Shown one piece after another: positions 3,317 to 62,365 of a stretch of 64,000 bases of DNA. The notes beneath the pieces were generated by a model that did not search any database, was not told where the DNA came from, and saw only the letters and a program-made list of their open reading frames with translations. The stretch is from the NCBI RefSeq assembly GCF_006345805.1, contig NC_043022.1:17174001-17238000 (forward strand). The letters run 5' to 3'. How positions within the stretch are numbered: position 1 is the first letter of the stretch; the number at the start of each line of letters is the position of its first letter. A program made the position numbers and the translations under genes. Source of the DNA: Octopus sinensis (taxonomy: Eukaryota).

Positions 3317-3353
<37 letters not shown>

Positions 3354-3896: not shown

Positions 3897-3939
3897 GTAA
3901 ATGGTTACCTCTGTTTTTGTTCAACTCTTCATTGTCATC

Positions 3940-4752
3940 ATCATCGTCATCACCATCATTGCCACCACCACCATCACCATCACCACCACCATCACCACCA
4001 CCACCACCAGCATCACCAGCATCACCACCACACCACACCACCACCACCACCACCACCACCACCACCACTACCACCACCATCACCACCACCACCACCACCA
4101 CCACCACCACTACCACCACCATCACCACCACACACCACCACCACCACTATCACCACCACCATCCACCACCACCACCACCACCACACCACCATCACCACCA
4201 CCACCACCACCACCACCACTACCACCACCATCACCACCACCACCACCACCACCACCACCACCACCACCATCACCACCACCACACCACCATCACCACCACC
4301 CCACCACCACCACCACCACCACCATCACCACCCCCCCCACCACCACCACCACCACACTACCCCACCACCACCACCACCACCACCACCACACTACCACCAC
4401 CATCACCACACACCACCACCACCACACCACCACTACCACCACCACCACCACCACCACCACCACCACTACCACCACCATCACCACCACCACCACCACCACC
4501 ACTATCACCACCACCATCACCACCACCCCATCACTACCACCACCACACCACCACACACCCCACCACTACCACCACCACACCCACACCACCACTACCACAC
4601 CATCACACCACCACCACCACCACCACCACCACCACACCACTACCACCACCACCACCACCACCACCACCACCACTACACCACCATCACCACACCACCCACC
4701 ACCACCACTATCACCACCACCATCACCACCACCACCATCACTACCACCACCA
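3940..4752. repeat. (CCA/CAC)n trinucleotide microsatellite, ~800 bp, intronic
   Basis: Directly visible. Source of the poly-His/Pro/Thr ORFs. Confidence 0.95.
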
Positions 4753-5009
4753 CCTCTGCTCGTTTTTAATTCAGTGTTTTGGAGGAATGTGAAATGAAGT
4801 CTTGCCCAAGAACACAACGGACTGCCTGCTTCAGGAATTGAACTCTTGACCTCTTGAGATATATGTATATATATATATATACAAGCAGGAGGACCCAGTT
4901 TCACTCAGGTTATAAACTCATAGCCCTTAATACACTACTCTTTTCTTACTCCTTTGCATTTGCTGGAGTCAGGTGGAATTTTTCAAGTGCAGTCTTGAAG
5001 CTTCTAATT

Positions 5010-21884: not shown

Positions 21885-23445
21885 CTTATATATATATATG
21901 TATGTAAGAATGTATGTATATGTGTGTATGTATGTGTGTGTATATATGTATGTATGTATATAACAATGTATGTATGTGTGTGTGTATATATGTATGTATG
22001 TATGTAAGAATGTATGTATGTGTGTGTATATATATATATGTATGTATGTATATAAGAATGTATGTATGTATGTGTGTGTATGTATGTGTGTGTGTATATG
22101 TATGTATGTATATAAGAATGTATGTATGTGTGTATGTATGTGTGTGTGTGTATATGTATATATGTATGTATATAAGAATGTATGTATGTGTGTGTATGTA
22201 TGTGTGTGTGTATATGTATGTATGTATGTATATAAGAATGTATGTATGTGTGTGTGTATATGCATGTATATAAGAATGTATGTGTGTGTGTATATATATG
22301 TATGTATGTATATAAGAATGTGTGTATGTGTGTGTATGTATGTATGTATGTATGTATATAACAATGTATGTGTGTGTGTGTATATATGTATGTATATAAG
22401 AATGTATGTATGTGTGTGTATGTATGTGTGTGTATATTATGTATGTAAGAATGTATGTATATGTGTGTATGTATGTGTGTTGTATATGTATGTATGTATA
22501 TAACAATGTATGTATGTGTGTGTGTATATATGTATGTATGTATGTAAGAATGTATGTATGTGTGTGTATATATATATATGTATGTATGTATATAAGAATG
22601 TATGTATGTATGTGTGTGTATGTATGTGTGTGTGTATATGTATGTATGTATATAAGAATGTATGTATGTGTGTGTATGTATGTGTGTGTGTATATGTATA
22701 TATGTATGTATATAAGAATGTATGTATGTGTGTGTATGTATGTGTGTGTGTATATGTATGTATGTATGTATATAAGAATGTATGTATGTGTGTGTGTATA
22801 TGCATGTATATAAGAATGTATGTGTGTGTGTATATATATGTATGTATGTATATAAGAATGTGTGTATGTGTGTGTATATGTATGTATGTATGTATATAAC
22901 AATGTATGTGTGTGGTGTATATATGTATGTATGTATATAACAATGTATGTATGTGTGTGTGTATATGTATGTATGTATGTAAGAATGTATGTATGTGTGT
23001 GTATATATATATATGTATGTATGTATATAAGAATGTATGTATGTATGTGTGTGTATGTATGTGTGTGTGTATATGTATGTATGTATATAAGAATGTATGT
23101 ATGTGTGTGTATGTATGTGTGTGTGTATATGTATATATGTATGTATATAAGAATGTATGTATGTGTGTGTATGTATGTGTGTGTGTATATGTATGTATGT
23201 ATGTATATAAGAATGTATGTATGTGTGTGTGTATATGCATGTATATAAGAATGTATGTGTGTGTGTATATATATGTATGTATGTATATAAGAATGTGTGT
23301 ATGTGTGTGTATATGTATGTATGTATGTATATAACAATGTATGTGTGTGTGTGTATATATGTATGTATATAAGAATGTATGTATGTGTGTGTATGTATGT
23401 GTGTGTATATATATGTATGTATGTATATACATGTATACACACACA
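21885..23445. repeat. Higher-order minisatellite built of (TATG)/(TG)/(TA) with AAGAATG/AACAATG anchors
   Basis: The anchor series recurs with a 540-bp offset (21961/22501, 22314/22854), then a ~435-bp offset (22546/22981, 22854/23288). Confidence 0.8.
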
Positions 23446-24720: not shown

Positions 24721-24790
24721 TAACATTTTCAGGTCCCTTATGTACATATTTTTTCCATTTCTTGCTTTTTTTTCTTTTTTTTTTTGGCAG

Positions 24791-25497
24791 GTGGAGGAAC
24801 CAGAATGGATTTGCGGAGATATGTCAGTGCCGATGATCTTTTACATTTGTATGAAAGAGATAAAACTCCAAGACAAAAGCAATCCACTGGACGGAAATAT
24901 CGGACTCTACAACGAACTAACGAACATCTCCCTTCACCTCTTCTTGATTCTCCAAAAATGAACATGGACTTGGCACCGTTGTCTCCATCGAGAACAGCAG
25001 AGAATCATAACTTAAGCTCAGCTGTAAAAAGTGCTTACATCAGTAATGAATACCTGAGAATAAGGGATTTCATAAACCGAACGGATCCAGACATATTGCA
25101 ACAAATTCTTCTCAGAACACTGGAGTACCGTAACTCAAAGGACATTATAGCCCTGGGCATTATTTTCCCCCGTAACCACTTCTCAACATACAACAACTAC
25201 CACTGTGCCCGCTGCCACAAACAATATAACCCGATGGACAGGGAGCATTGTTTGTTGCGCCATTCAGTTCAGTATGTGCGTAAAATTCAACAAGACGACC
25301 GAGGGTCGAATTTTTTCTGTCGGCTCTGTGGTAAAACTTTCTATCTTAAGAATGTCTTCATTTATACAGAGAAAATAACGAATCAAAACACGGGTTATTG
25401 TTTTGTTGGTCTGCACACCAATGATGCTCGTCTCGTTAAATATGGAGGGGAGGCAAAGACCTGTGAGGAATATGGTTGCGTAGAATTTTACGTGTGA
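24791..25497 (+). CDS. Large terminal exon encoding an uncharacterised protein with a C-terminal Cys/His-rich (putative Zn-binding) domain; first in-frame ATG at 24805 (230 aa)
   Basis: Strong acceptor (T)n-ggcag|, long non-repetitive ORF, HCARCHKQY..C..H...FCRLCGKTF...YCFVGLHT.D...Y..KTCEEYGC, and AATAAA at ~25613. Confidence 0.8.
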
Positions 25498-28319: not shown

Positions 28320-28897
28320 AATAATAATAATAATAATTGTGTACAGTGCTCAGGTGCACTACAACTCATCTAAAGTGTATATATAACCAGGTGTAGTTTC
28401 GGCGGATTTCGGAAAGCATGAGGGCCTTAAAGGATGCAGTGTCATGGCAGTCAACAACTGACGCAGGCAGTTTATTCCATGCTTCAGCAACTCTGAGCGT
28501 GAAGAAATGTTTCCGAAAGTCATGGGAGCTGTGCTGTTTTCTGACTTTGTAGGCATGTCCACGTGTGTTGGACACATGGAGATCAAAAAGGTGTTCAGTG
28601 TTGTTGTTGGTGAGGTGGTTGATAACTTTGTGGGTGTTTACCAAGTCCGTCGCCAGACGCCGGAGCTTCAGTGAATCCATGCCCAGGGAAACAAGGCGCT
28701 CAGAATATGGTAGGTGTCTGATGGAGGGTATGCGTTTGGTTGCATGTCTCTGGACAGATTCCAGGAGGTCAATGTTCTGAGCAAGATATGGGTTCCAAAC
28801 TGATGATGCGAATTCCAAGTGTGGTCGTACCATAGCTGTATACAGCTTTAAATAGATGGCTGGAGAGCGGCTAACAAAAGTCTTGCTGAGTGATGCC
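28320..28897 (-). mobile_element. CR1 LINE 3' end (young copy)
   Basis: Translation differs from the 52.1 kb copy at 2 of ~155 aa. Confidence 0.9.
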
Positions 28898-31409: not shown

Positions 31410-32849
31410 ATGAATGTTTACGAGAAATTTCGGCCACAAATTATCCGGAATCTCACTCAAATCGATGATGTTCTGGATTATTTACAGTCTGGTGAACATA
31501 TCACAGAGAGCAATTATGAAAGTATAAGATCAGAAAAGAAAGAAAGCGACAAAATTCGAGAAATGTTGAACATTTTAACAAAAAGAAGTTGTCCTCCTCA
31601 AACGTTCGTGAAGATTCTTTCCGAAACAGGAAACGAATTTTTAGAGAAACTATTCCAAGAACACTTGAACATGAAAATTGAAAGAAAAGTTGTTGAAGAA
31701 AAACCAAAGCCACCAGCAAGAGACAAACGGAGAGTATTTATTATGAAAGGTATGGACGCAGACGACAAATTACATGAATGTTTTTCAAGAAAAAATCCAG
31801 ACTGGGAAGTATCAAATCATTTAGGTTCTATAAACAAATTAAAGGAGGTAATTGGTTCCGTACCAGAGAATAAGTTCAGTTATTTTGATATTATTGTTTC
31901 ATGCGATGAAGATCGTAACCATATTACTAATGAAAGTCTGAAAACAATTTTGGCTCGTATTGAAAAAGAACTCTTACCGGAGTTTCCACCAAGCATCATC
32001 ACTTTTTTGATTATTGTTGATGGGTATGATGATAAGGATTATGTTTTTCATTCCGACACAAAACCCGTGAGTTTTAGGGATGCTAAGATTCGCAAACCAG
32101 TCCTTAGAATATTGACAAGAAAGTTCTTGCATGGATTCCTAGAAGCTTTCTTAAAAGGTGAGGAAACGTTCAATATTTTCATTGCTAAAAAATTCGATTT
32201 GGAAAACAATCTTATGAAAAATAATCCATCGGAAGGAAAAACAGATAAAAGGAAAATATTTATTATGCAAGGTCTGGAACAAAACGAAATATTACGTGAA
32301 TGTTTTTCAGGAAGTAATCCAGACTGGGAAGTATCAACTCTTTGTGGCTCTATAACCAAATTAATAAAGGAAATTGCTTCCATACCAGAGAATAAGTTCA
32401 GTTATTTTGATATTATTGTTTTATGCGATGAAGAGGGTAACCATATTACTAATGAAAGTCTGAAAACAATTTTGCCTTGTATTGAAAACGAACTCTTACC
32501 GAAGTTTCCACCAAGCATCATCACTCTTTTGATTATTGTTAATAATAAAGAGACTGAATCTAAGCCTGTGCAAGAATCCCCATCTGTGAATACGGACGAT
32601 CTTCGAGATTCCAGGCCTGTGCAGGAATCCCAATCTGAGAATATGGACGATCTTCGAGATTCCAGGCCTGTGCAGGAATCCCAATCTGAGAATATGAATG
32701 ACTTACCAGAATCCCAATCAGTGACTGGAGTACTCAAAGCAGACTCTTGCGAAAAATTCTTTAATGCTTTCACCGAAAGTAAAGAAATGTTCAATGTTTT
32801 TATTCGAAAAGCTGATACAAGAAAACAGCTAGGATTACAAGTTTATTGA
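31410..32849 (+). CDS. CARD + 2 caspase-like alpha/beta modules (paralogue 1, 479 aa, single coding exon)
   Basis: Intact ORF. The N-terminal ~85 aa match the CARD pattern (R..II.NL..I.DVLDYL.S...IT...YE.I......DK.R.ML.IL.KR....F..IL.ETG). Module starts at 31725 and 32247, with a 3x17-aa linker repeat at 32559-32711. ATG used rather than the TTG in the ORF track. Confidence 0.9.
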   Translation: MNVYEKFRPQIIRNLTQIDDVLDYLQSGEHITESNYESIRSEKKESDKIREMLNILTKRSCPPQTFVKILSETGNEFLEKLFQEHLNMKIERKVVEEKPKPPARDKRRVFIMKGMDADDKLHECFSRKNPDWEVSNHLGSINKLKEVIGSVPENKFSYFDIIVSCDEDRNHITNESLKTILARIEKELLPEFPPSIITFLIIVDGYDDKDYVFHSDTKPVSFRDAKIRKPVLRILTRKFLHGFLEAFLKGEETFNIFIAKKFDLENNLMKNNPSEGKTDKRKIFIMQGLEQNEILRECFSGSNPDWEVSTLCGSITKLIKEIASIPENKFSYFDIIVLCDEEGNHITNESLKTILPCIENELLPKFPPSIITLLIIVNNKETESKPVQESPSVNTDDLRDSRPVQESQSENMDDLRDSRPVQESQSENMNDLPESQSVTGVLKADSCEKFFNAFTESKEMFNVFIRKADTRKQLGLQVY

Positions 32850-36659: not shown

Positions 36660-37576
36660 TGGTGTTTGTTTTGTATTTATAATAAAATATATACAAATTA
36701 TAAAAATGATTAAAAAATATACATATATATACAGTACTGTTTCTACTTTGTGGATTTTCCCCTATCACAGGGGGTTCCGGTACACAGCACCTACGATAGT
36801 CGAGAGATTAGCATATCCTGAAAACCAAGAACTTTGTCTGTGTGTGTGTGTGTATGTATGTGTGTGTATTCTTGTGTGTGTAAAGACGTCTTAATGGTTA
36901 GGACGTTGCACTCCACATCACTAGATTAATGTTTTAATACCCTGGATGCTTATGAATTCAAGCAAAACACTTTCTTTCACCTGAACCCCAGTCCACTCGG
37001 CTGCAAAGGGGTAAACCTGTAATGGAATGGCATTCTATTTGCCGGGGGTGGGGGGGATATGTTGGCTTCGTCCACCTGGGCAGCAGGGGGGGTAACATTC
37101 AACAGCTACAACTGTGTGTAGAGGTGCATTGTAACCAGTGGTGTATAACAAAAAAATGTCTGATACCCTGATATATATGTGTGTGTGTGTGTATGAAGGA
37201 GAAAAGAAAATGGAGATAAGGAAGTTAAGAATTGTTTATTATCAACAGCAAACTGGTCATGTTAAAATAAATGGATAAGCCCACATAATATAACATCCAA
37301 AGTTATGTTTTTTCCCTATGATGAAATTACACTCCTGACACGTAAATGTAAATTTGTAATTAGATTATTGAGTATTGATTGAAACGGGTTGTAAGAATCG
37401 AAGATGACCAGTTTGCTTTTTGCTGAACTGCTACGTCACAGTGACCTAAATACACTGATACCAGTTGTCAGGTGGTGGCGGAGGGAAACACACACGCATC
37501 AGCCTGTGGTTATATACACTCGTCAGCCTGAGGCTACATACAGAAGTCACTTGCACAGGGTGTTATTAACATCATC
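36660..37576 (+). repeat. Distal upstream block of CARD gene 2, duplicated at 45158-46496
   Basis: Colinear near-identity with 45158-46496 apart from a SINE in the second copy. Confidence 0.9.
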
Positions 37577-37852: not shown

Positions 37853-40800
37853 ATGAATGTTTACGTGAAACTTCGGCCACAAATTATCCGGAATCTCACT
37901 CAAATCGATGATGTTCTGGATTATTTACAGTCTGGTGAACATATCACAGAGAGCAATTATGAAAGTATAAGATCAGAAAAGAAAGACAGCGACAAAATTC
38001 GAGAAATGTTGAACATTTTAACAAAAAGAAGTTGTCCTCCTCAAACGTTCGTGAAGATTCTTTCCGAAACAGGAAACGAATCTTTAAAGAAACTATTCCA
38101 AGAACACTTACCGAAAATGGAAAGAGAAGTTGTTGAAGAAAAACCAATGCCACAAGCAAGAGACAAACGGAGAGTATTTATTCTGGAAGGTATGGACACA
38201 GACGAAAAATTACTTGAATGTTTTTCAAGAAAAAATCCAGACTGGGAAGTATCAAATCATTTAGGTTCTATAAACAAATTAAAGGAGGTAATTGGTTCCG
38301 TACCAGAGAATAAGTTCAGTTATTTTGATATTATTGTTTTATGCGATGAAGACTATAATTATATTACTAATGAAAGTCTGAAAACAATTTTGCCTCGTAT
38401 TGAAAAAGAACTCTTACCGGAGTTTCCACCAAGCATCATCACTTTTTTGATTATTGTTGATGGGAATGATGATAGTGGTTATGTTTTTCATTCCGACACA
38501 AAACCCGTGAGTTTTAGGGATGCTAAGATTCGCAAACCAGTCCTTAGAATATTGAAAATAAAGTTCTTGCATGGATTCCTAGAAGCTTTCTTAAAAAGTG
38601 AGGAAACGTTCAATATTTTCATTGATATAAAATTCCTATGGGAAAAAAGTCTTGGAGATAAGAAACCAGTAGAAGAAACAGGAGACAAAAGGAAAGTTTT
38701 TATTCTGGAAGGTTTGGAACAAGATGAAAAATTACACAAACATTTTGCAGAAAGAAATCCCGACTGGGATGTGTCTTTTATTTTAAACCAAAAGTCGTTA
38801 ATGCAACAAATTACTTCCATAGCTCTGAATGAATTTAGTTATTTTGATATTATTGTTTTATGCGATGAAGAGGGTAACCATATTACTAATGAAAGTCTGG
38901 AAACAATTTTGCCTCGTATTGAAAAAGAACTCTTACCAAAGTTTCCACCAAGCATCATCACTTTTTTGATTATTGTTGATGGGAATGATGATAACGGTTA
39001 TGTTTTTCATTCCGACACAAAACCTGTGAGTTTTGGTGATGCTCAGATTCCCAAACCCGTCTTCAGAATAGTGAAAAAGAATATTTTTGAAGACTACATA
39101 GAAGCTTTCTTCAGACACGATGAAATGTTCAATATCTTCATTGCTAAAAAATTCGATTTGGAAAGCAATTTTATGAAAAATAATCCATCGGAAGGAAAAA
39201 CAGATAAAAGGAAAATATTTATTGTGGAAGGTATGGAACAAGACGAAAAATTACACAAACATTTTGCAGAAAGAAATCCAGACTGGGATGTGTCTTTTAT
39301 TTTAGGCTCTCTAACCAAATTAAAGGAGAAAATTGCTTCCATAGCTCCAAATGAATTCAGTTATTTTGATATTATTGTTTTATGCGATGAAGAGGGTAAC
39401 CATATTACTAATGAAAGTCTGAACACAATTTTGGCTCGTCTTGAAAAAGAACTCTTACCAAAGTTTCCACCAAGCATCATCACTTTTTTGATTATTGTTG
39501 ATGGGAATGATGATAACGGTTATGTTTTTCATTCCGACACAAAACCTGTGAGTTTTGGTGATGTTCAGATTCCCAAACCCGTCTTCAGAATAGTGAAAGA
39601 GAATATTTTTGAAGACTACATAGAAGCTTTCTTCAGACATGATGAAATGTTCAATATCTTCATTGCTAAAAAATTCGATTTGGAAAACAATTTTCTGAAA
39701 AATAATCCATCGGAAGGAAAAACAGATAAAAGGAAAATATTTATTGTGGAAGGTCTAGAACAAGACGAAAAATTACACAAACATTTTGCAGAAAGAAATC
39801 CAGACTGGGATGTGTCTTTTATTTTAGGCTCTCTAACCAAATTAAAGGAGAAAATTGCTTCCATAGCTCCAAATGAATTCAGTTATTTTGATATTATTGT
39901 TTTATGCGATGAAGAGGGTAACCATATTACTAATGAAAGTCTGAAAACAATTTTGGCTCGTCTTGAAAAAGAACTCTTACCAAAGTTTCCACCAAGCATC
40001 ATCACTTTTTTGATTATTGTTGATGGGAATGATGATAACGGTTATGTTTTTCATTCCGACACAAAACCTGTGAGTTTTGGTGATGTTCAGATTCCCAAAC
40101 CCGTCTTCAGAATAGTGAAAAAGAATATTTTTGAAGACTACATAGAAGCTTTCTTCAGACATGATGAAATGTTCAATATCTTCATTGCTAAAAAATTCGA
40201 TTTGGAAAACAATTTTATGAAAAATAATCCATTGGAAGGAAAAACAGATAAAAGGAAAATATTTATTGTGGAAGGTCTGGAACAAGACGAAAAATTACAC
40301 AAACATTTTGCAGAAAGAAATCCAGACTGGGATGTGTCTTTTATTTTAGGCTCTCTAACCAAATTAAAGGAGAAAATTGCTTCCATAGCTCCAAATGAAT
40401 TCAGTTATTTTGATATTATTGTTTTATGCGATGAAGAGGGTAACCATATTACTAATGAAAGTCTGAACACAATTTTGGCTCGTCTTGAAAAAGAACTCTT
40501 ACCAAAGTTTCCACCAAGCATCATCACTTTTTTGATTATTGTTGATGGGAATGATGATAACGGTTATGTTTTTCATTCCGACACAAAACCTGTGAGTTTT
40601 GGTGATGTTCAGATTCCCAAACCCGTCTTCAGAATAGTGAAAGAGAATATTTTTGAAGACTACATAGAAGCTTTCTTCAGACATGATGAAATGTTCAATA
40701 TCTTCATTGCTAAAAAATTCGATTTGGAAAGCAATTTTCTGAAAAATAATCCATCGGAAGGAAAAACAGATAAAAGGAAAATATATATTGTGGAAGGTCT

Positions 40801-43800
40801 AGAACAAGACGAAAAATTACACAAACATTTTGCAGAAAGAAATCCAGACTGGGATGTGTCTTTTATTTTAGGCTCTCTAACCAAATTAAAGGAGAAAATT
40901 GCTTCCATAGCTCCAAATGAATTCAGTTATTTTGATATTATTGTTTTATGCGATGAAGAGGGTAACCATATTACTAATGAAAGTCTGAAAACAATTTTGG
41001 CTCGTATTGAAAAAGAACTCTTACCAAAGTTTCCACCAAGCATCATCACTTTTTTGATTATTGTTGATGGGAATGATGATAACGGTTATGTTTTTCATTC
41101 CAACACAAAACCTGTGAGTTTTGGTGATGCTCAGATTCCCAAACCCGTCTTCAGAATAGTGAAAAAGAATATTTTTGAAGACTACACAGAAGCTTTCTTC
41201 AGACACGATGAAATGTTCAATATCTTCATTGCTAAAAAATTCGATTTGGAAGCAATTTTATGAAAAATAATCCATCGGAAGGAAAAACAGATAAAAGGAA
41301 AATATTTATTGTGGAAGGTCTGGAACAAGACGAAAAATTACACAAACATTTTGCAGAAAGAAATCCAGACTGGGATGTGTCTTTTATTTTAGGCTCTCTA
41401 ACCAAATTAAAGGAGAAAATTGCTTCCATAGCTCCAAATGAATTCAGTTATTTTGATATTATTGTTTTATGCGATGAAGAGGGTAACCATATTACTAATG
41501 AAAGTCTGAAAACAATTTTGGCTCGTATTGAAAAAGAACTCTTACCAAAGTTTCCACCAAGCATCATCACTTTTTTGATTATTGTTGATGGGAATGATGA
41601 TAACGGTTATGTTTTTCATTCCGACACAAAACCTGTGAGTTTTGGTGATGCTCAGATTCCCAAACCCGTCTTCAGAATAGTGAAAAAGAATATTTTTGAA
41701 GACTACATAGAAGCTTTCTTCAGACATGATGAAATGTTCAATATCTTCATTGCTAAAAAATTCGATTTGGAAAACAATTTTATGAAAAATAATCCATCGG
41801 AAGGAAAAACAGATAAAAGGAAAATATTTATTGTGGAAGGTTTGGAACAAGACGAAAAATTACACAAACATTTTGCAGAAAGAAATCCAGACTGGGATGT
41901 GTCTTTTATTTTAGGCTCTCTAACCAAATTAAAGGAGAAAATTGCTTCCATAGCTCCAAATGAATTCAGTTATTTTGATATTATTGTTTTATGCGATGAA
42001 GAGGGTAACCATATTACTAATGAAAGTCTGAAAACAATTTTGGCTCGTCTTGAAAAAGAACTCTTACCAAAGTTTCCACCAAGCATCATCACTTTTTTGA
42101 TTATTGTTGATGGGAATGATGATAGTGGTTATGTTTTTCATTCCGACACAAAACCTGTGAGTTTTGGTGATGTTCAGATTCCCAAACCCGTCTTCAGAAT
42201 AGTGAAAAAGAATATTTTTGATGACTACATAGAAGCTTTCTTCAGACATGATGAAATGTTCAATATCTTCATTGCTAAAAAATTCGATTTGGAAAGCAAT
42301 TTTATGAAAAATAATCCATCGGAAGGAAAAACAGATAAAAGGAAAATATTTATTGTGGAAGGTCTGGAACAAGACGAAAAATTACACAAACATTTTGCAG
42401 AAAGAAATCCAGACTGGGATGTGTCTTTTATTTTAGGCTCTCTAACCAAATTAAAGGAGAAAATTGCTTCCATAGCTCCAAATGAATTCAGTTATTTTGA
42501 TATTATTGTTTTATGCGATGAAGAGGGTAACCATATTACTAATGAAAGTCTGAAAACAATTTTGGCTCGTATTGAAAAAGAACTCTTACCAAAGTTTCCA
42601 CCAAGCATCATCACTTTTTTGATTATTGTTGATGGGAATGATGATAACGGTTATGTTTTTCATTCCGACACAAAACCTGTGAGTTTTGGTGATGCTCAGA
42701 TTCCCAAACCCGTCTTCAGAATAGTGAAAAAGAATATTTTTGAAGACTACACAGAAGCTTTCTTCAGACACGATGAAATGTTCAATATCTTCATTGCTAA
42801 AAAATTCGATTTGGAAAGCAATTTTATGAAAAATAATCCATCGGAAGGAAAAACAGATAAAAGGAAAATATTTATTGTGGAAGGTCTGGAACAAGACGAA
42901 AAATTACACAAACATTTTGCAGAAAGAAATCCAGACTGGCATGTGTCTTTTATTTTAGGCTCTCTAACCAAATTAAAGGAGAAAATTGCTTCCATAGCTC
43001 TAAATGAATTCAGTTATTTTGATATTATTGTTTTATGCGATGATGAGGGTAACCATATTACTAATGAAAGTCTGAAAACAATTTTGGCTCGTCTTGAAAA
43101 AGAACTCTTACCAAAGTTTCCACCAAGCATCATCACTTTTTTGATTATTGTTGATGGGAATGATGATAACGGTTATGCTTTTCATTCCGACACAAAACCT
43201 GTGAGTTTTGGTGATGCTCAGATTCCCAAACCCGTCTTCAGAATAGTGAAAAAGAATATTTTTGAAGACTACATAGAAGCTTTCTTCAGACACGATGAAA
43301 TGTTCAATATCTTCATTGCTAAAAAATTCGATTTGGAAAACAATTTTCTGAAAAATAATCCATCGGAAGGAAAAACAGATAAAAGGAAAATATTTATTGT
43401 GGAAGGTCTGGAACAAGACGAAAAATTACACAAACATTTTGCAGAAAGAAATCCAGACTGGGATGTGTCTTTTATTTTAGGCTCTCTAACCAAATTAAAG
43501 GAGAAAATTGCTTCCATAGCTCCAAATGAATTCAGTTATTTTGATATTATTGTTTTATGCGATGAAGAGGGTAACCATATTACTAATGAAAGTCTGAAAA
43601 CAATTTTGGCTCGTATTGAAAAAGAACTCTTACCAAAGTTTCCACCAAGCATCATCACTTTTTTGATTATTATTGATGGGAATGATGATAACGGTTATGT
43701 TTTTCATTCTGACACAAAACCTGTGAGTTTTGGTGATGCTCAGATTCCCAAACCCGTCTTCAGAATAGTGAAAAAGAATATTTTTGAAGACTACACAGAA

Positions 43801-44376
43801 ACTTTCTTCAGACATGATGAAATGTTCAATATCTTCATTGCTAAAAAATTCGATTTGGAAAGTAATTTTCTGAAAAATAATCCATCGGAAGGAAAAACAG
43901 ATAAAAGGAAAATATTTATTGTGGAAGGTCTGGAACAAAACGAAATATTGCACGAACATTTTTCAAGAGATATTCCAGACTGGGATGTATCATTTATCTT
44001 AAACCAAAAGTCGTTAATGGAACAAATTGCTTCCATACCTATTAATGAATTTAGTTTTTTTGATATTATTGTTGTATGTGATGAAGACTCTAATGAGATT
44101 ACTAATGAAAGTCTGAGAACAATGCTATCCAATTATCCAACAAGCATCATCACATTTTTGATAACTGTTAATGAGATGGATGATAACAAAACTGAATCTC
44201 AGCCTGAGATTAACAATGATACTGAGGCTGTGATTGCATTATTGAAAAGGGAGTTTTTCCCTGAATTCTGGGATTCTTTCATTAAAAGTCTGGAAATGTT
44301 CAATGTTTTCATTCGAAAAGCTGATACAAGAAAACACCTCAGATTACAAGTTCATGGAAGAGAAAAGCTTTCGTGA
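37853..44376 (+). CDS. CARD + 12 caspase-like modules (paralogue 2); ~2174 aa if the 1-bp deletion at ~41250 is repaired, otherwise 1136 aa + 1038 aa split ORFs
   Basis: Module starts at 38165, 38687, 39206, 39728, 40250, 40772, 41293, 41815, 42337, 42859, 43381 and 43903. The period is 522 bp, except 519 bp (38687-39206) and 521 bp across the frameshift (ttggaagc versus ttggaaagc/ttggaaaac in other units). Confidence 0.85.
39206..43902 (+). repeat. Coding tandem array: nine near-identical 522-bp units
   Basis: Directly visible. Units differ at only a few recurrent sites. Confidence 0.97.
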
Positions 44377-45157: not shown

Positions 45158-45735
45158 GGTGTTTGTTTTGTATTTATAATAAAATATATACAAATTATAA
45201 AAATGATTAAAAAATATACATAGGAGTGGCTGTGTGGTAAGTAGCTTGCTAACCAACCACATGGTTCCGGGTTCAGTCCCACTGCATGGCATCTTGGGCA
45301 AGTGTCTTCTGCTATAGCCCCAGGCCGACCAATGGATTTGGTAGACGGAAACTGAAAGAAGCCTGTCGTATATATGTATATATATATATATATATGTATG
45401 TGTGTTTGTGTGTCTGTGTTTGTCTCCCTAGCATTGCTTGACATCCGATGCTGGTGCGTTTATGTCCCCGTTACTTAGCGGTTCGGCAAAAAGAGACCGA
45501 TAGAATAAGTACTGGGCTTACAAAAGAATAAGTCCCGGTGTCGAGTTGCTCGATTGAAGGCGGTGCTCCAGCATGGCCGCAGTCAAATGACTGAAACAAG
45601 TAAAAGAGAGTAAAAAAGAGTATATATACAGTACTGTTTCTACTTTGTGGATTTTCCCCTATCACAGGGGGTTCCGGAACACAGCACCTACGATAGTCGA
45701 GGGATTAGCATATCCTGAAAACCAGGAACTTCCTC

Positions 45736-45769
<34 letters not shown>

Positions 45770-46496
45770 TGTGTGTGTATGTGTGTGTATTTTTGTGTGT
45801 GTAAAGACGTCTTAATGGTTAGGACGTTGCACTCCACATCACTAGATTAATGTTTTAATACCCTGGATGCTTATGAATTCAAGCAAAACACTTTCTTTCA
45901 CCTGAACCCCAGTCCACTCGGCTGCAAAGGGGTAAACCTGTAATGGAATGGCATTCTATTTGCCGGGAGTGGGGGGGATATGTTGGCTTCGTCCACCTGG
46001 GCAGCAGGGGGGTAACATTCAACAGCTACAACTGTGTGTAGAGGTGCATTGTAACCAGTGGTGTATAACAACAAAATGTCTGATACCCTGATATATATGT
46101 GTGTGTGTGTGTGTGTATGTATAAAGGAGAAAAGAAAATGGAGATAAGGAAGTTAAGAATTGTTTATTATCAACAGCAAACTGGTCATGTCAAAATAAAT
46201 GGATAAGCCCACATAATATAACATCCAAAGTTATGTTTTTTTCCTCTGATGAAATTACACTCCTGACACGTAAATGTAAATTTGTAATTAGATTATTGAG
46301 TATTGATTGAAACGGGTTGTAAGAATCGAAGATGACCAGTTTGCTTTTTGCTGAACTGCTACATCACAGTGACCTAAATACACTGATACCAGTTGTCAGG
46401 TGGTGGCGGAGGGAAACACACACGCATCAGCCTGTGGTTATATACACTGGTCAGCCCGAGGCTACATACAGAAGTCACTTGCACAGGGTGTTATTA
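45158..46496 (+). repeat. Orphan duplicate of the gene-2 distal upstream block with a SINE inserted at 45221-45620
   Basis: Matches 36660-37576 at an offset of ~8.5 kb. It ends where a (CAT)n SINE tail meets the catcatcg site and is not followed by the proximal block or a CARD ORF. Confidence 0.85.
45221..45620 (+). mobile_element. tRNA-derived SINE inserted after the segmental duplication
   Basis: Absent from the orthologous aaaaaatatacatatatatacagtac site at ~36715-36735. Confidence 0.85.
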
Positions 46497-46860
46497 TCAT
46501 CATCATCATCATCATCGTTTAACGTCCGCTTTCCATGCTAGCATGGGTTGGATGATTTGACTGAGGACTGGCGAACCAGATGGATGCACCAGGCTCCAAT
46601 CTTGAACTGGCAGAATTTCTACAGCTGGAAGCCCTTCCTAACGCCAACCACTCTGAGAGTGTAGTGGGTGCTTTTACGTGTCACTGGCAATGACAGCGCT
46701 CGAATCTTTTACAGATGCCACCAGCACAGGTGCCAGTAAGGCGACACAGGTAACAATCACGCTCGGATGGTGTCTTTTACATGCCACTGGCTCAGAGGCC
46801 AGTTAGCCGCTTTGGCAACGATCATGCTCGGATGGTGCTCTTAACACCCTACTAGCACGG
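46495..46860 (-). mobile_element. (GAT)n-tailed SINE
   Basis: catcatcgtttaacgtccgctttccatgctagcatgggttgg... Confidence 0.8.
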
Positions 46861-52070: not shown

Positions 52071-52127
52071 GTAATGCCTTTCCCATTTTCTCTGTTGGTG
52101 CCAAGAGAAATGTTAAAATATGATAGA

Positions 52128-52658
52128 AAGCTGTATACAGCTATGGTACGACCACACTTGGAATTCGCATCATCAGTTTGGAACCCCTATCTTGCTCAGA
52201 ACATTGACCTCCTGGAATCTGTCCAGAGACGTGCAACCAAACGCATACCCTCCATCAGACACCTACCATATTCTGAGCGCCTTGTTTCCCTGGGCATGGA
52301 TTCACTGAAGCTCCGGCGTCTGGCGACGGACTTGGTAAACACCCACAAAGTTATCAACCACCTCACCAACAACAACACTGAACACCTTTTTGATCTCCAT
52401 GTGTCTAACACACGTGGACATGCCTACAAAGTCAGAAAACAATACAGCTCCCATGACTTTCGGAAACATTTTTTCACGCTCAGAGTTGCTGAAGCATGGA
52501 ATAAACTGCCTGCGTCAGTTGTTGACTGCCATGACACTGCATCCTTTAAGGCCCTCATGCTTTCCGAAATCCGCCGAAACTACACCTGGTTATATATACA
52601 CTTTAGATGAGTTGTAGTGCACCTGAGCACTGTACACAATTATTATTATTATTATTAT
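52128..52658 (+). mobile_element. CR1 LINE 3' end (young copy), ~260 bp upstream of the gene 3 ATG
   Basis: Near-identical to the 28.3 kb copy, with an (ATT)n tail. Confidence 0.9.
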
Positions 52659-52919: not shown

Positions 52920-54746
52920 ATGGAGGTTTACGTGAGACTTCGGCCACAAATTATCCAGAATCTCACTCAAATCGATGATGTTCTGGATTATTTACAGTCT
53001 GATGGTCATATCACAACTAGAAATTACGAAACTATAAAATCACAAAATACAGAAAGCAACAGCATTCGGAAAATGTTGGAGATTTTACAAAAAAGAAATT
53101 GTTTACCTGAAACGTTCATCAAGATTCTTTCCGAAACAGGAAACGAATCTTTAAAGAAACAATTCCAAGAATACTTTACGAAAATGGGAAGAGAAGTTGA
53201 CCAAGAAAAACCAAAGCCACAAGCAAGAGACAAAAGGAAAATATTTATTCTGGAAGGTATGGACACAGACGAAAAATTACGTGAATGTTTTTCAAGAAGT
53301 AATCCAAACTGGGAAGTGTCTTTTATTTTTGGTTCTATAACCAAATTAAAGGAGGAAATTGCTTCCTTACCAGAGAATAAGTTCAGTTATTTTGATATAA
53401 TTGTTGTATGTGATGAAGACTATAAATATATTACTAATAAAAGTCTGAAAACAATTTTGCCTCGTATTGAAAAAGAACTCTTACCAAAGTTTCCACCGAG
53501 CATCAGCACTTTTTTGATTATTGTTGATGTGAATGATGATAATGGTTATGTTTTTCATTCCGACACAAAACCTGTGAGTTTTGGTGATGCTCAGATTCGC
53601 AAACCAGTCTTTAGAATATTGAAAACAAAGTTCTTGCATGGATTCCTAGAAGCTTTCTTTAAAAGTGAGGAAACGTTCAATATTTTCATTGATAAAAAAT
53701 TCCTATCGGAAAAAAGTCTTGTAGATAATAAACCAGTAGAAGAAACAACAGACAAAAGGAAAATATTTATTGTGGAAGGTCTGGAACAAGACGAAAAATT
53801 ACACAAACATTTTGCAGAAAGAAATCCAGACTGGGATGTGTCTTTTCTTTTAAACCAAAAGTCGTTAATGCAACAAATTACTTCCATAGCTCTGAATGAA
53901 TTTAGTTATTTTGATATTATTGTTCTATGTGATGAAGAGGGTAACCATATTACTAATGAAAGTCTGAAAACAATTTTGGCTCGTATTGAAAAAGAACTCT
54001 TACCAAAGTTTCCACCAAGCATCATCGCATTTTTGATAATTGTTGATGGGAATGATGATAACGGTTATGTTATTCATTCCGACACAAAACCTGTGAGTTT
54101 TGGTGATGCTCAGATCCCCAAACCCGTCTTCAGAATAGTGAAAAAGAATATTTTTGAAGACTACATAGAAACTTTCTTCAGACACGAGGAAATGTTCAAT
54201 ATCTTCATTGCTAAAAAATTCGATTTGGAAAACAATTTTATGAAAAATAATCCATCGGAAGGAAAAACAGATAAAAGGAAAATATTTATTGTGGAAGGTA
54301 TGGAACAAAACGAAAAATTGCACGAACATTTTTCAAGAGATATTCCAGACTGGGATGTGTCTTTTATTTTTAGCCATGAGTCGTTAATGGAACAAATTGC
54401 TTCCATACCTCTGAATGAATTTAGTTTTTTTGATATTATTGTTGTATGTGATGAAGACTCTAATGAGATTACTAATGAAAGTCTGAGAACAATGCTATCC
54501 AAATATCCAACAAGCATCATCACATTTTTGATAACTGTTAATGAGATGGATGATAACAAAACTGAATCTCAGCCTGAGATTAACAATGATACTGAGGGTG
54601 TGATTGCATTATTGAAAAGGGAGTTTTTCCCTGAATTCTGGGATTCTTTCATTAAAAGTAAGGAAATGTTCAATGTTTTCATTCGAAAAGCTGATACAAG
54701 AAAACACCTAAGAATACAAGTTCATGGAAGAGAAAAACTTTTGTGA
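52920..54746 (+). CDS. CARD + 3 caspase-like modules (paralogue 3, 608 aa, single coding exon)
   Basis: Intact ORF from MEVYVRLRPQ. Module starts at 53232, 53754 and 54273 (522 and 519 bp spacing, as in the first units of gene 2). The 3' flank is homologous to that of gene 2. Confidence 0.9.
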   Translation: MEVYVRLRPQIIQNLTQIDDVLDYLQSDGHITTRNYETIKSQNTESNSIRKMLEILQKRNCLPETFIKILSETGNESLKKQFQEYFTKMGREVDQEKPKPQARDKRKIFILEGMDTDEKLRECFSRSNPNWEVSFIFGSITKLKEEIASLPENKFSYFDIIVVCDEDYKYITNKSLKTILPRIEKELLPKFPPSISTFLIIVDVNDDNGYVFHSDTKPVSFGDAQIRKPVFRILKTKFLHGFLEAFFKSEETFNIFIDKKFLSEKSLVDNKPVEETTDKRKIFIVEGLEQDEKLHKHFAERNPDWDVSFLLNQKSLMQQITSIALNEFSYFDIIVLCDEEGNHITNESLKTILARIEKELLPKFPPSIIAFLIIVDGNDDNGYVIHSDTKPVSFGDAQIPKPVFRIVKKNIFEDYIETFFRHEEMFNIFIAKKFDLENNFMKNNPSEGKTDKRKIFIVEGMEQNEKLHEHFSRDIPDWDVSFIFSHESLMEQIASIPLNEFSFFDIIVVCDEDSNEITNESLRTMLSKYPTSIITFLITVNEMDDNKTESQPEINNDTEGVIALLKREFFPEFWDSFIKSKEMFNVFIRKADTRKHLRIQVHGREKLL

Positions 54747-57349: not shown

Positions 57350-60093
57350 CATGGGTCACCAAACTACGGCCTACAGGCCAGGTCCAGCCCGCTGCCTTAT
57401 AATGAAAAAAATAAACATGCTTTTATACTGCTTCTTACACTTCTTTGATTACACGTGTCATATGTATACTGAGTCAGTCAGTTCATGTGCTGTGTATTTC
57501 ACCTGCCACATTAATTACATGTGCCTCGGACGAGTCAGTTATTAGTGATTGCAATTAAAACAAGAATATCTGACGCCGAGGCCTAAGACTGCTTTTGTTT
57601 TTTCTTCACCCTTCATTATGGCTACTAAGAAGAGAAAGGTTGATGATGAATGTTGCATTCTAAATAATAAAGAATGGGGAGAAATGTACTTCTTTGTGGA
57701 AACTATCGACCAGAAAGCTAGTTGCCTGATATGTTATGAAAGAGTACAATATTTGTCATCACTACAAAGCAAAACATCTCTCAACACATTCTAAATATTT
57801 TGGAAAGTTGCGGTCCGAGAAATTTGAATCTATGAAATGTAGTTTGGAATCTCAAAGTAATTTCTTTATGAAAAATTTTGCTGAAAATGAATCTATCACT
57901 CATGTAAGTTACAAAATAGTGAATAAGTTGGCAGAGTGAGGAAAACCATTTACTGACAGAAACTTTCTAAAAGAGTGCATGATGGAAGCAGCAAATGACT
58001 TGTGTCCTGAAAAAGCTAACATGTTTGGCTGTATCAGACTTTCAGCAAGTTCAGTTGTGCGGAGAATAGAAGAACTTGGAGAGAATATACAGTTACGGAT
58101 ACGTGAGAAAGCTAAGAAATTTTTGTGGTATTCTCCTGCAAGGGATGAGTCTGCTGGTCTCTCTAGAACATCACAACTTCTTGTGTCCATTTGTGGTTTT
58201 AATTGCAACTTTGAGATTATAGAAGAAATGGCATCCATTTGCAGTATACGTGGAACAACAACTGGCGAAGGTATTTTCATGGAGGTGCAGAAAACTTTGC
58301 AAAACGATAACCTTTAGTGGAATCAGCTTCGGTGTGTTACAGTCGATGGAGGAAAAAGCATGGCAGGAATGAGGAAGGGTTTGGTAGGGCGGATCCAGAC
58401 CAAATTGCAGGAGCTTCAACTTCTGAAAGCTCTGTTTATACACTGCATTATACATCAGCAAGCACTCTGTGGAAAATACTTAGATATTTCTTGTGTACTA
58501 AAACCGGTTACAACTGTGGTGAACTTTTTTCGGAATCATGGGCTTAATCAGCGACAGTTCCAGGCTTTCCTTGAAGAAATGGATTCTAATTTCTGTGACT
58601 TGCCTTACTACACAGAAGTGAGATGGCTCAGTTGCAGTAAAGTCCTGTTTCGTTTTTATAAGCTCCGAAGAGAAACAGATCCTTTTCTCACCGAAAAGAA
58701 TCGAGCTGATCCACAGCTGTCAGATCCTTCGTGGTTATCAAAGTTGTCGTTTTTAGTTGACGTCACTTCTCATACGAATGAATTGAATTTAAAACTGCAA
58801 AGAAAGAATAACCTTGTCTGTGATCTCTATAGAATTATTGCAGCATTTTGGAGAAGGCCATTATTGTTTGAAGCATGGCTTGAAGGAGAAAACTTCTCTC
58901 ATTTTCAGTGTTTTCAAGAGTTTTGCACAGAAAATGTGGAACATGTTAACCTTGAGTTTCAGAAAGAAATTATTCGGGTCTTAAATACGCATTTTTCTCA
59001 AAGATTTTAAAATCTTGGACAGAATTGAGAATGAAATCCTTTTGTTAGAGAATCCCTTTGATCTGTTCTCTTCATAACATGCCAACTGAACTACAACTGG
59101 AGCAAATTTTTTCAAAACTGAAATGTGTGAAGTCAATACATCAGACAAGGTTCACTGATAAATATTTGAAAGCAATTCTTATGGTTGGCTGCAGCAATAA
59201 TAAAGCAAACGTTGATGATATTTTATGCAATTCAGCTACATACCCACTTTTTCTAAAAATTCTTGTTTACTGCTTTTATTATTTTGCGCATTTTATAATA
59301 ATAAATAATAATGAAATTATTGTATACAGTGCTCAGGTGCACCACAACTTGTCAGAAAGTGCATATAAAGTACATGCAGTAGTGTAGAAATGTCTGGAAA
59401 GTGAACATGCTTGTGTGTGTATGGAGGGGAGAAAATCAAGTGTAGTGTTGGCGAATCTCAGGAAGCATGGAAGTCTTGAAGGAAACAGTGCTCCGACAAC
59501 TAACAATCGATGTCGGCAGTTTGTTCCATGCTTCAGCAACTCTCAGCGTGAAAAAATGTTTCCTGAAGTCATGGGAGCTGTGCTGTTTTCTTACTTTGTA
59601 AATATGTCCACGGGTGTTAGATGGGTGGAGTTTGAAGAGGTGCTCAGAGTTATTGTTTGTGCGATGGTTGATAATTTTATGGGTGTCTGCCAAGTCAGCT
59701 GCCAGACGTCGGAGTTTCAATGTGTCCATGCCCAGGGAAGTAAGGCGTTCAGGATATGGCAAATGCCTGATGGAGGGTATTCTTTTGGTTGGGCAAGATA
59801 GGGGTTCCAGACCGGTGATGCAAATTCCAGGTGAGGTCCTACCATAGCTATATAAAGCCGCAGATAGATAGCCGGAGAGCGGCTCACAAAGGATTTGGTG
59901 AGTGATGCCAAGACACCCTCAGCCTTCTTGACAATTTTATGTATTGCTAAATAAATAGGTTGACTGTCTTTATCGTTTGTGTACATTCAGTGTATTCTAT
60001 GTTGTACTTAATTGAACAAAATATTTATCCGGCCCACCCTTGGCATTCTTTTAGCTATATCTGGCCCACTATGATAAAAGTTTGGTGACCCAT
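57350..60093 (+). mobile_element. hAT Charlie/SPIN-like (GTF2IRD2-type) transposon with both TIRs; pseudogenised and internally deleted
   Basis: TIR ATGGGTCACCAAACT at 57351 and its reverse complement at 60079-60093. Fragmented transposase: KKRKVDDEC, CLICYE, DESAGLSRTSQL, HCIIHQQALC, EVRWLS. CR1 nested at 59.3-59.95 kb. No TSD is evident. Confidence 0.85.
59320..59950 (-). mobile_element. CR1 LINE 3' end, diverged subfamily, nested in the hAT element
   Basis: GPHLEFASPVWNP...TRGHIYKVRK...FFTLRVAEAWNKLP. Confidence 0.85.
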
Positions 60094-60879: not shown

Positions 60880-61460
60880 CAGTCAAGAGAATTTGTCGAC
60901 AGTACAGTAGTGTTTGTTTCAATATATTCCTTCTCCTCAGAACTGTCGGTTACCAATCTTCCTTCTTTGCCATCAAACATTGACCAACGAAGCAATTAAA
61001 CCTTCACGCTTGAAGTATCACTTTGTTGCAAAGCATTCTCACAAGAAGGACAAGCCGTTATCACACTTTTTGCAACTGAGCTCCTCTTTCAAAGAGCAAA
61101 CACAAACATTCAACACGCTGCTCCAGGAAACTAGTAAACGGGACAATGACGGGTTGATTGCATTGCTTGTTGCAAAGTCTGGGAAGTCTCACACAATTGG
61201 AGAAACATTACTTTGCCTGGTTATCAAAGAGGTTTTGTCAACCGTTATGCACGAATAACCCAATAACATTATGAAGAAGATCCCATTTAGTATTAACATG
61301 GTTTCTCAACACATTGATGAAATGGCTAACGGTGTCAAACATCAGCTCATTAATATCCTCCAGCATTCTGAATTTTCTATACAAGTGGATGAGTCAATTG
61401 TTGTGGACAATCAGTATTTGATGATGGTATATGTTCGATATTTCAGTGAAGACCTTCAGC
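60880..61460 (+). pseudogene. hAT Buster/ZBED5-type transposase fragment
   Basis: EAIKPSRLKYHF..KH, AKSGKSHTIGETL, IPFS.N.V..HIDEMA, EFSIQVDES...LMMVYVRYF. Confidence 0.85.
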
Positions 61461-61469
61461 CATTAACCA

Positions 61470-62365
61470 GCTTGGAAGAAGACCGTCGCAGAGAGGGAAG
61501 ACCTTCAAAATTGGATGAAGATATTTTGAAGGCAAAAACCGAAGAAAACTCAAATATCACGACTGAAGAACTTGCAGAAGAGTTGAAAGTTTCTAAAAGT
61601 ACTACTCATGAGCACTTAGTGAAGCTAGGATACATTTCTTGCTATAATGTATGGGTCCCTCACAAACTCTCAGAAAAGAATTGCTTGGACCGGTATTCCG
61701 TTTGCGGTGTGCTTTTGAAACAGAATGAAAGCATGCCTGTTTTGAAACAACTTGTGACTGAAGATGAAAAATGGACTGTGTACGAATGCATGGTGTGGAA
61801 AAGGGTCTCCCAAAACAATAACCAAAGATGACCATCCATGCCAAAAAAAGCTATGCTTTTTGTTTGGTGAGATCATAAAGGCCTCTCTTACAAAACCAGA
61901 CCGTTAATTCTGATGTGTACTGTCGTCAGCTGGCTAATTTGAGCCAAAACATCAAAGAATTGAGGCCAGAGATTGCCAACAGGAAAGGAGTAGTGTCCCA
62001 ACATGACTATGCCTGACCACATGTGTCTTGGGCTATTCGAACAAAGTTACATGAACCTGGCTGGCATCTCTTACCCCATCCACCACATTCTCCTGATATA
62101 GCGCCATCCAATTACCATTTGTTTTCGTCTTTACAGATCTCATTGCAAGGAAAAACATTCAACAATTTAGATGGAGTCAAAATGCATCTAGATAACTTTT
62201 TTCTTCAAAACCAAATTTTGTGCTGATGGAATATTTAAATTGCCTGAAAGAGGGTCAAAAGTCATTAATAATAATGGAAATTATTTCAATGAATAAAATT
62301 TATTGAAAGGGCAAATATTTATATCCCTTTTTTCATATTCAGAACTTTCCAGACAACCTGATAGA
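61470..62365 (+). pseudogene. Mariner (Mos1/Hsmar1-like) transposase remnant with right TIR
   Basis: GRPSKLDED..., WVPHKL, VTEDEKW, HPPHSPDIAPSNYHLF. Ends actttccagacaacctgata. Confidence 0.85.

Follow-up and report, generated by a model that had tools for sequence, protein, structure and literature searches.

Several regulators of cell death, such as cFLIP-L (CFLAR), caspase-12 and Caenorhabditis elegans CSP-2/CSP-3, consist of a death-fold recruitment domain followed by a non-catalytic, caspase-shaped domain, and cFLIP-L and other pseudocaspases work by pairing with or blocking real caspases. In the CARD initiator caspases (caspase-2/-9, Dronc and CED-3), an N-terminal CARD is joined through a short linker to an α/β domain, while the CARD-only decoys (CARD16/COP, CARD17/INCA, CARD18/ICEBERG and viral CARDs) modulate CARD-driven caspase activation. 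CARD proteins wire the signalling of apoptosomes, inflammasomes and RIG-I-like receptors (RLRs), and the innate immunity and cell-death control of cephalopods are poorly known. Here we describe a gene cluster in 64,000 nucleotides of the Octopus sinensis genome (contig NC_043022.1, positions 17,174,001 to 17,238,000 of the forward strand; this whole stretch is called the window below). The cluster encodes octopod-specific proteins in which a CARD is followed by copy-number-variable arrays of an α/β module of about 174 amino acids. On the basis of its predicted structure we tentatively read the module as a stripped-down, non-catalytic and caspase-derived relative of the caspase-haemoglobinase fold, an arrangement that would resemble the pseudocaspases named above; this is counted as the most likely of the readings considered.

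A tblastn search of the window with one module and one N-terminal domain as queries identified three intronless paralogues on the forward strand (G1, G2 and G3), each starting with a CARD, and a total of 17 modules (2 in G1, 12 in G2 and 3 in G3; Table 1). The repeated module that the first-pass annotation had noted at 38165-38686 was confirmed and corresponds to the first module of G2. The unit measures 522 bp, or 174 amino acids, and the G2 array runs from one first-type and one second-type module through nine middle modules to one terminal-type module. The middle modules (m3-m11) share 97.7-99.6 % DNA identity among themselves, while their identity is 94 % with the second-type module (m2), 80 % with the first-type module (m1) and 70 % with the terminal-type module (m12). 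Judged from these identities, the middle modules are the recently expanded core of the G2 array. The terminal type has a shorter linker and its own C-terminal tail (...RKADTRKHLRLQVHGREKLS, followed by the stop codon) with a predicted extra β-strand. G1 is composed of a first-type module and a terminal-like module whose linker carries a repeat insert: the 51-bp tandem repeat encodes a low-complexity acidic/Ser/Gln-rich stretch (RDSRPVQESQSENMDDL...) of 33 residues, which in the alignment lies exactly in the β4-β5 linker.

For the comparison with existing annotation the O. sinensis assembly GCA_006345805.1 (chromosome CM016884.1) was used, in which the gene coordinates map one-to-one. G1 is annotated there as a 462-aa CARD gene, and the part of G2 downstream of its frameshift as a separate protein of 1038 aa. 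The RefSeq models P0003 and P0004 begin with the same MEVYVRL as G3. In the RefSeq isoforms P0002 and P0004 (LOC118768008/9) the front of a module is joined to the back of the next module. The gene model of P0004 covers 16.9 kb, beginning where G2 begins and finishing where G3 ends, and is probably artefactual, produced by spliced alignment over the repeats; P0002, unlike P0004, is a contiguous single-exon open reading frame (ORF) in the O. vulgaris assembly.

Apart from a 1-bp frameshift in module 6 of G2, the coding frame contains 0 stops in about 2170 codons, while the other frames contain 111 and 190 stops. At the frameshift every other copy and every O. vulgaris copy reads GGAAAGC, and the frame after it stays open for 1038 more codons, through six more modules. 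The orthologous locus in O. vulgaris is 98.4 % identical to the window and holds four cluster genes that encode 461, 286, 1821 and 602 aa; the 286-aa product has one chimeric module, and the 1821-aa gene is the orthologue of G2, an intact single-exon ORF with a CARD and 10 modules. Since this orthologue is intact, the long array is real, and the G2 frameshift is probably an assembly error (long reads, short A run) or a very recent lesion. The array thus has 10 copies in O. vulgaris and 12 in its close relative O. sinensis, and copy numbers of 1, 2, 3, 10 and 12 were seen in the family. Besides the genes, an element of about 0.9 kb upstream of G2 (36701-37576) recurs downstream of G2 (45601-46504) with 93.6 % identity; no CARD gene comes after the downstream copy, and in O. 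vulgaris the element stands before three cluster genes. The repetition of the element and its place before three O. vulgaris genes indicate that the cluster grew by duplicating segments of about 7 kb.

The ratio of nonsynonymous to synonymous substitution rates (dN/dS, Nei-Gojobori method) was calculated between paralogous or equivalent parts of the genes, and none of the values is individually significant. It was 0.25 for second-type modules, 0.57-0.65 for terminal modules, about 0.9 for middle modules, 1.0-2.3 for first modules and, from small counts, 1.8-1.9 between the CARDs of the paralogues. Taken together, these values indicate that the family is fast-evolving. Ratios of about 0.9 in the middle modules and of at least 1 in first modules and CARDs, the frameshift in G2, and the near identity of the middle modules, which leaves little time for selection, would also be seen if the long array were functionless, that is, a recently amplified neutral or decaying repeat in a CARD gene, with the 12-module copy as a pseudogene. 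We consider this improbable, given that the 1821-aa ORF is intact in O. vulgaris, that the frameshift amounts to one missing A within a short run of A in an assembly built from long reads, with an open frame beyond it, and that dN/dS is 0.25-0.65 in second-type and terminal modules. About 4 % of random substitutions per module would give a stop. The frames nevertheless stay open in paralogues that are only 68-80 % identical in DNA (a divergence of 20-32 % between module types) and across the split between Octopus and Argonauta, whose modules are 21-23 % identical in protein sequence, which argues for selection on coding capacity.

The N-terminal domain of G2 matched the Pfam family PF00619 with a score of 40.1 bits (cut-off 23.9; E=3.7e-10; residues 6-81 on profile positions 6-81 of 85), and the top matches of a profile search against the PDB were all CARDs (MDA5, NLRP1, Apaf-1, ASC and RIPK2). 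By these profile matches, the domain is a bona fide CARD. Its dN/dS between paralogues is a hint that the recruitment domain itself is under diversifying selection.

Relatives of the cluster were few. A word-indexed search of 5.8 billion proteins returned 2 relatives, and an exhaustive hidden Markov model (HMM) search of 1.84 billion cluster representatives returned 6 matches, all of them octopod save P0007, a spurious bacterial repeat protein. The real relatives are LOC118768007/8/9 of O. vulgaris/sinensis, LOC106872585 of O. bimaculoides and GAB1602176.1 of Argonauta hians, and the databases label all of them 'uncharacterized' or 'hypothetical'. The family, as sampled in these databases, is confined to octopods (Octopus spp. 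and Argonauta). A literature search found no description of a CARD-module family, and searches with single modules and 13 family members gave no match in Pfam, NCBIfam or PDB sequences and nothing reproducible in PADLOC. As far as these database and literature searches show, the architecture of a CARD with 1-12 tandem modules is undescribed. The Argonauta protein has a CARD and then two modules; its CARD is 49 % identical to that of octopus, its modules only to the extent given above. No more than three residues (D56, I58 and C61) are invariant throughout the family, and they all lie in the block N-x-F-x-Y-F-D-I-I-V-L-C. The annotated intron of the Argonauta homologue (L001, BAAFZT010000022.1, 10001-12319) looks spurious, and read-through gives a terminal-type tail (...NFNSYVEKMAKNHELDVKLLNRFLY, followed by the stop codon).

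The first-pass annotation had aligned the module by eye with caspase-9 and caspase-8 and interpreted it as a condensed, catalytically dead caspase domain. The peptides quoted for this alignment all exist, but they were drawn from different module types: KIFIVEG, QDEKLHKHF and SLTKLKEKIASI belong to middle modules, while first modules supplied FLHGFLEAF and terminal modules DTRKHL. Two motifs had been described as present in all 17 modules; C-D-(E/D) is indeed found in 17/17, but IIV in only 14/17, being III in G2 module 11 and ITV in two terminal modules. Strand β3 ends in L-C-D-E-(E/D) and β4 in I-I-V-D-G (ITVNE in terminal modules), so that in neither the 17 modules nor the homologues is there a His at the end of β3 or a Cys at the end of β4 that would form the caspase dyad. 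In the AlphaFold2 models described below, the β1-α1 connection has 4-5 residues and β5 leads straight into α4, which leaves no loop L3. In caspases the β1-α1 connection has about 16 residues. Substrate loops L1 and L3, with the Arg/Gln/Arg that bind the P1 Asp, are thus absent from the predicted structure of the module. With neither dyad nor (as predicted) loops, the module is dead as a caspase whatever its fold, and on this point the first-pass annotation was right. Because no catalytic set is recognizable and no polar residues other than D56 and C61 are invariant, the role of the modules is most likely non-enzymatic. The conserved Asp before the modules (…GKTD/KRK…) was also considered as a caspase cleavage site of a polyprotein; since O. 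bimaculoides and Argonauta have Asn, Glu or Phe at this position, the idea was given little weight.

Homology to caspases was examined with the catalytic domains of human caspases-3, -7, -9, -8, -1 and -6, to which vertebrate caspases-3/-6/-7 were added; the human caspase-3 sequence used was 100 % identical to the database entries P0010/P0011. The results of these sequence tests weigh against a caspase origin. Pfam Peptidase_C14 gave no match at E<=10 in 13/13 family members, and alignment of the module profile with a caspase profile of 6-13 sequences by hhalign (local, global and low-mact) gave probabilities of 1-2 %. The best local match was out of register (module β1 'DKRKIFIVEG' on caspase β4 'GKPKLFIIQACRG'), and the second-best alignment (module 15-61 versus caspase-3 α1-β3) had the register proposed in the first-pass annotation, but E=0.42. 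Real modules scored -2.2 to +1.5 bits with a caspase HMM (hmmsearch --max), the same as reversed or shuffled sequences. In Smith-Waterman alignments of the three module types with caspases (21 tests, z against shuffles), z was -0.2, -0.9 and -1.5 for caspase-9 and +1.2, -1.0 and +1.3 for caspase-8; a single outlier, caspase-1 versus the middle module (z = 3.5, 2/300), loses significance once all 21 tests are taken into account. Nothing relevant came from searching PDB sequences with the module profile, and a protein search with the caspase profile yielded vertebrate caspase-3/-6/-7 only and no mollusc caspases. The caspase resemblance seen by eye is therefore at the chance level for strand-loop patterns of α/β proteins, and the case illustrates that strand-loop patterns of Rossmann-like proteins can yield motif matches that persuade the eye and score no better than chance. 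The by-eye alignments carry no weight, and the residue equivalences drawn from them (His-Gly replaced by Cys-Asp, QAC by IIV) cannot be fixed.

The predicted structures speak more in favour of the caspase fold. In caspases, a 2-1-3-4-5-6 sheet with antiparallel β6 is built from elements in the order β1α1β2α2β3α3β4-linker-β5α4α5β6, with five helices; a receiver is a (β/α)5 domain with helix 4 between β4 and β5, and the Toprim order is likewise unlike the caspase order. The AlphaFold2 model of a single middle module, from an alignment of 13 sequences, had a predicted local distance difference test score (pLDDT) of 61 and a predicted template modelling score (pTM) of 0.60, and showed β1 α1 β2 α2 β3 α3 β4, a disordered stretch (106-126) and a low-confidence β-α-β-α. 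The model of a module pair (G3 modules 2 and 3, 12 sequences) had a pLDDT of 65.8, with 73-83 in the C-terminal parts, and a pTM of 0.46; in both modules β1 α1 β2 α2 β3 α3 β4 is followed by a disordered loop and β5 α4 α5, and a short last strand β6 is present in the terminal module only (E323-325, G3). The models thus give an α/β sandwich of moderate confidence. As predicted in the pair model, the order of elements is that of caspases, with no helix between β4 and β5, two helices after β5 and a last edge strand. The disordered β4-β5 loop, in which indels are more frequent than elsewhere in the family and which includes the 33-residue insert, would occupy the position of the caspase inter-subunit linker.

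In a Foldseek search of the PDB with the single module, the top match was procaspase-7 (1gqf_A, E=0.013, prob 0.96, query-normalised TM-score (TMq) 0.36), and procaspase-3, drICE, caspase-3 and the caspase-6 zymogen were within the top 32. With the pair model, caspase-3 (7xn5_C) ranked first by target-normalised TM-score (0.51; E=0.029, prob 0.99), and gingipain K, whose clan is shared with caspases, was found at E=0.005. Over both models, the best single-domain caspase matches had E-values of 0.013-0.03 and TM-scores of 0.36-0.51. A search of the BFVD gave nothing significant; its top match was the unannotated entomopoxvirus protein AMV063 (E=0.015), on which no paper was found in a literature search. 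The same searches also supply points against the caspase fold. No match of the single module reached E<=1e-3, TM-scores were 0.3-0.5 overall, and the caspases were interleaved with CheY-type receivers and thiamine diphosphate (ThDP)-enzyme domains; receivers (1i3c, 3grc; PleD) scored as well as or nearly as well as caspases, and the only matches of the pair model at E<1e-3 were to PleD, a tandem-receiver protein (E=2.5e-4, TMq 0.24). Moreover, the two models, both built from shallow alignments, conflict in the C-terminal third, where MFNIFIA is a strand or a helix. A structure search had been named in the first-pass annotation as the way to refute its proposal: it gave no clean win to another fold, but no significant single-domain match either. 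The caspase-fold reading is thus favoured by the top Foldseek match and the element order but opposed by every sequence test and by the near-equal receivers, and the structural evidence leans to the caspase fold without being decisive.

The receiver matches might instead mean that the module is an orphan or Rossmann-like domain (2-1-3-4 core) unrelated to caspases, for example flavodoxin-like or receiver-like without helix 4. It would then serve as a CARD-tethered binding module or as a small-ligand- or metal-binding module, and the C-terminal edge of the sheet would carry a cation or ligand site made up of acidic residues (E9; C61-D62-E63-E/D64; D100, D103 and D104). CheY-type receivers rank 2, 7, 10 and 14 in the Foldseek list of the single module, PleD is the sole match of the pair model with an E-value under 1e-3, generic Rossmann-like proteins make up the remainder of both lists, no sequence link of the module to any family was found, and K132 (end of β5) and D62 (end of β3) recall the receiver Lys and Asp. 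For a receiver-like domain, however, the pair model lacks the helix between β4 and β5, that stretch being disordered and variable in length, and has two helices after β5. In addition, the DD/D/T/K set is not conserved (E9 is replaced by K, Q or A and D62 by N or W, and there is no Thr/Ser at the end of β4), none of the 13 members matched Pfam Response_reg, the structural matches to receivers do not go beyond a generic fold, and the PleD match is inflated by the superposition of two domains on two domains. To our knowledge, receivers are essentially absent from animals and never fused to a CARD, which also weighs against a receiver-like domain. TIR and SEFIR domains gave no Pfam match at E<=10 and did not appear in the top 50 of three Foldseek searches. 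The wider proposal of a Rossmann-like domain unrelated to caspases is in our view a serious though doubtful alternative. If it is correct, the module would represent a new CARD-coupled domain superfamily, found in octopods only and missed by current profile libraries.

Another possibility considered was a Toprim domain related to the OLD or AriB nucleases, which would make the proteins CARD-activated arrays of a metal-binding nuclease effector. A middle module matched Pfam Toprim at E=0.11 (residues 2-75 on profile positions 1-81 of 96) and G2 module 1 matched PADLOC AriB at E=0.0054, and by eye the motifs 'VEGxxD/E' and 'CDED', which lie about 53 residues apart, a typical distance, recall the Toprim Glu and DxD. 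Each family was matched by only 1/13 members, however; the Pfam score was 13.1 bits against a cut-off of 23.1, and unrelated PADLOC families (DrmC, 0.013; PDC-M05A, 0.027) gave similar E-values. The putative catalytic Glu is replaced by K, Q or A in six members, from G1 m1, G1 m2, P0001, P0003 m1 and Argonauta, N or W stands in place of the first Asp in Argonauta, and no Toprim protein was among the top 50 of the three Foldseek searches. With acidic residues that are not conserved, matches that were not reproduced and no structural match, a Toprim identity was rejected as very improbable.

The genomic neighbourhood of the Argonauta homologue offers a further argument for a caspase origin. The Argonauta hians homologue is followed on the same strand, 10 kb downstream, by a 322-aa Peptidase_C14 gene, and the first exon of this caspase gene (L001 22113-22319) encodes a partial CARD (Pfam E=1.3e-3), which aligned with the CARD of the family in hhalign at E=1.7e-4. 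The gene for cFLIP adjoins its parent caspase-8 gene (PMC11121540), and the position of the Argonauta homologue beside a CARD-caspase parallels this arrangement. Several points of context tell against a caspase origin. The CARD of the Argonauta caspase is only 19 % identical to, and not specifically close to, the CARD of the family, and caspase CARDs were not singled out as closest in the PDB comparison. A search for caspase exons found none in the window itself, in the 10 kb on either side of the O. vulgaris cluster or up to 17 kb downstream of that of O. sinensis, so the adjacency in Argonauta is a single observation. Besides, dN/dS values near 1 would also fit relaxed constraint.

The caspase-derived reading, which we prefer, is also supported by the succession of CARD, short linker and α/β domain, since this is the architecture of initiator caspases. 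Under this reading, a CARD-caspase would have lost its His/Cys dyad and all four substrate-binding loops, and would then have diverged past sequence recognition. The CARD may bring the protein into CARD-CARD assemblies of the apoptosome, inflammasome or RLR type, where the array could act as a non-enzymatic multivalent scaffold or decoy. There it might pair with or sequester real caspase domains, as cFLIP-L does for caspase-8 and CSP-3 for CED-3, or alternatively display many copies of one binding surface. Unequal crossing-over would expand and contract the array and so set its valency, and fast evolution of the family would be expected under host-pathogen conflict. The fuller proposal of a multivalent pseudocaspase, in which the CARD docks up to a dozen chained, dead and loop-less caspase-fold domains into death- or inflammasome-type platforms, is possible but must be regarded as rather doubtful, and the chained dead caspases themselves are unproven. 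Such an array would be a high-capacity caspase sponge or a pre-assembled dimerisation template, with its copy number tuned under pathogen pressure.

If the multivalent proposal holds, both the architecture and the regulatory principle would be undescribed for any caspase relative. If the module is caspase-derived, the range of pseudocaspases (cFLIP, caspase-12, CSP-3) would reach to a drastically minimised and multimerised form. Being lineage-specific, fast-evolving and variable in copy number, the family is a candidate for regulating or effecting caspase activation in octopods, and it offers a natural experiment on pseudo-enzymes and repeat expansion in immune conflict.

Table 1. Genes, domains and repeats of the CARD-module cluster in the window (aa, amino acids; TRF, Tandem Repeats Finder)
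Feature	Position	Strand	Basis
G1: CARD and 2 modules	31410..32849	+	single ORF of 479 aa from ATG; tblastn
G1 CARD	31410-31721	+	tblastn
G1 modules 1, 2	31722-32243; 32244-32846	+	tblastn
51-bp tandem repeat, 2.6 copies, 95 % matches	32564..32696	+	TRF; inside the coding sequence of G1 module 2
G2: CARD and 12 modules, one exon, 1-bp frameshift	37853..44376	+	translations, module starts, tblastn
G2 CARD and linker of ~20 residues	37853..38161	+	Pfam PF00619, PDB profile search
G2 module 1, first-type	38162..38683	+	tblastn, alignment, identity matrix
G2 module 2, second-type (orthologous in type to G3 module 2)	38684..39202	+	tblastn, alignment, identity matrix
G2 modules 3-11, nine 522-bp middle modules	39203..43899	+	identity matrix, module starts
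G2 module 6 frameshift, GGAAGC for GGAAAGC	41247..41253	+	comparison of copies
G2 module 12, terminal-type, 158 aa	43900..44376	+	translation, alignment
G3: CARD and 3 modules (first, second, terminal type)	52920..54746	+	tblastn
G3 CARD	52920-53228	+	tblastn
G3 modules 1, 2, 3	53229-53750; 53751-54269; 54270-54743	+	tblastn

The window as a whole is eukaryotic in character and contains many microsatellites. Very long ones occur at 2566-4754 and 21889-23436, namely (TCTA)n, (CCA)n and (TATG)n tracts with respective lengths of about 0.9, 0.8 and 1.5 kb, the last with a higher-order period of 120 bp, and they produce long spurious ORFs. A near-identical pair of ORFs (MVRPHLEFASSVWNPYLAQNIDLLESVQR...) at 28366-28833 (-) and 52074-52610 (+) flanks G1/G2; these ORFs have no Pfam match and look like C-terminal tails of a retrotransposon. 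Two transposase-derived ORFs lie 3' of G3, one without a Pfam match (58360-59010) and one with a helix-turn-helix (61271-61831). At the matching spot downstream of the G3 orthologue in O. vulgaris, FAM200/GTF2IRD2-like and ZBED5 RNase-like families are annotated. A 237-aa ORF at 24784-25497 (+) has a Cys/His-rich C-terminal half (…CARCHKQYNPMDREHCLLRH…FFCRLCGKTF…) and no Pfam match, and could represent an exon or encode a small zinc-binding protein.

Comparison with known systems places the module at different distances from its candidate relatives. With Toprim domains (OLD nucleases, PARIS AriB) it shares a 'VEG' at the end of β1 and a 'D-E-D' at the end of β3, and with the CheY-like receiver or flavodoxin-like fold (PleD) it would share a three-layer α/β/α sandwich with a 2-1-3-4 parallel core. 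In addition to the domain succession, CARD initiator caspases and the module would be alike in the predicted order β1α1β2α2β3α3β4-linker-β5α4α5β6 (β6 in the terminal module only) and in a variable, disordered linker between the 'subunits'. Unlike initiator caspases, the octopod family has no SHG/QACxG dyad, no P1-Asp-binding Arg/Gln/Arg and no Pfam match for the module, its domain is repeated in tandem and its genes are intronless. Because the testable features that define caspases are absent from it, the family is not assignable to caspases. The CARD-only decoys are likewise encoded by fast-evolving, lineage-specific and tandemly duplicated CARD genes, but they consist of the CARD alone, whereas the octopod CARD bears a large array of structured modules. 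cFLIP-L has death effector domains (DEDs) instead of a CARD and a single pseudocaspase domain, which, unlike the module, is still recognisable by sequence as Peptidase_C14; the octopod module lacks loops L1 and L3 in its predicted form, falls short of a caspase domain by about 60-70 residues and occurs in chains of 2-12 copies. By analogy with cFLIP-L and the other pseudocaspases, pairing with or blocking of real caspases is the mode of action that we propose for the octopod proteins, and the family is best placed with the CARD-domain regulators and pseudo-enzymes of cell-death signalling.

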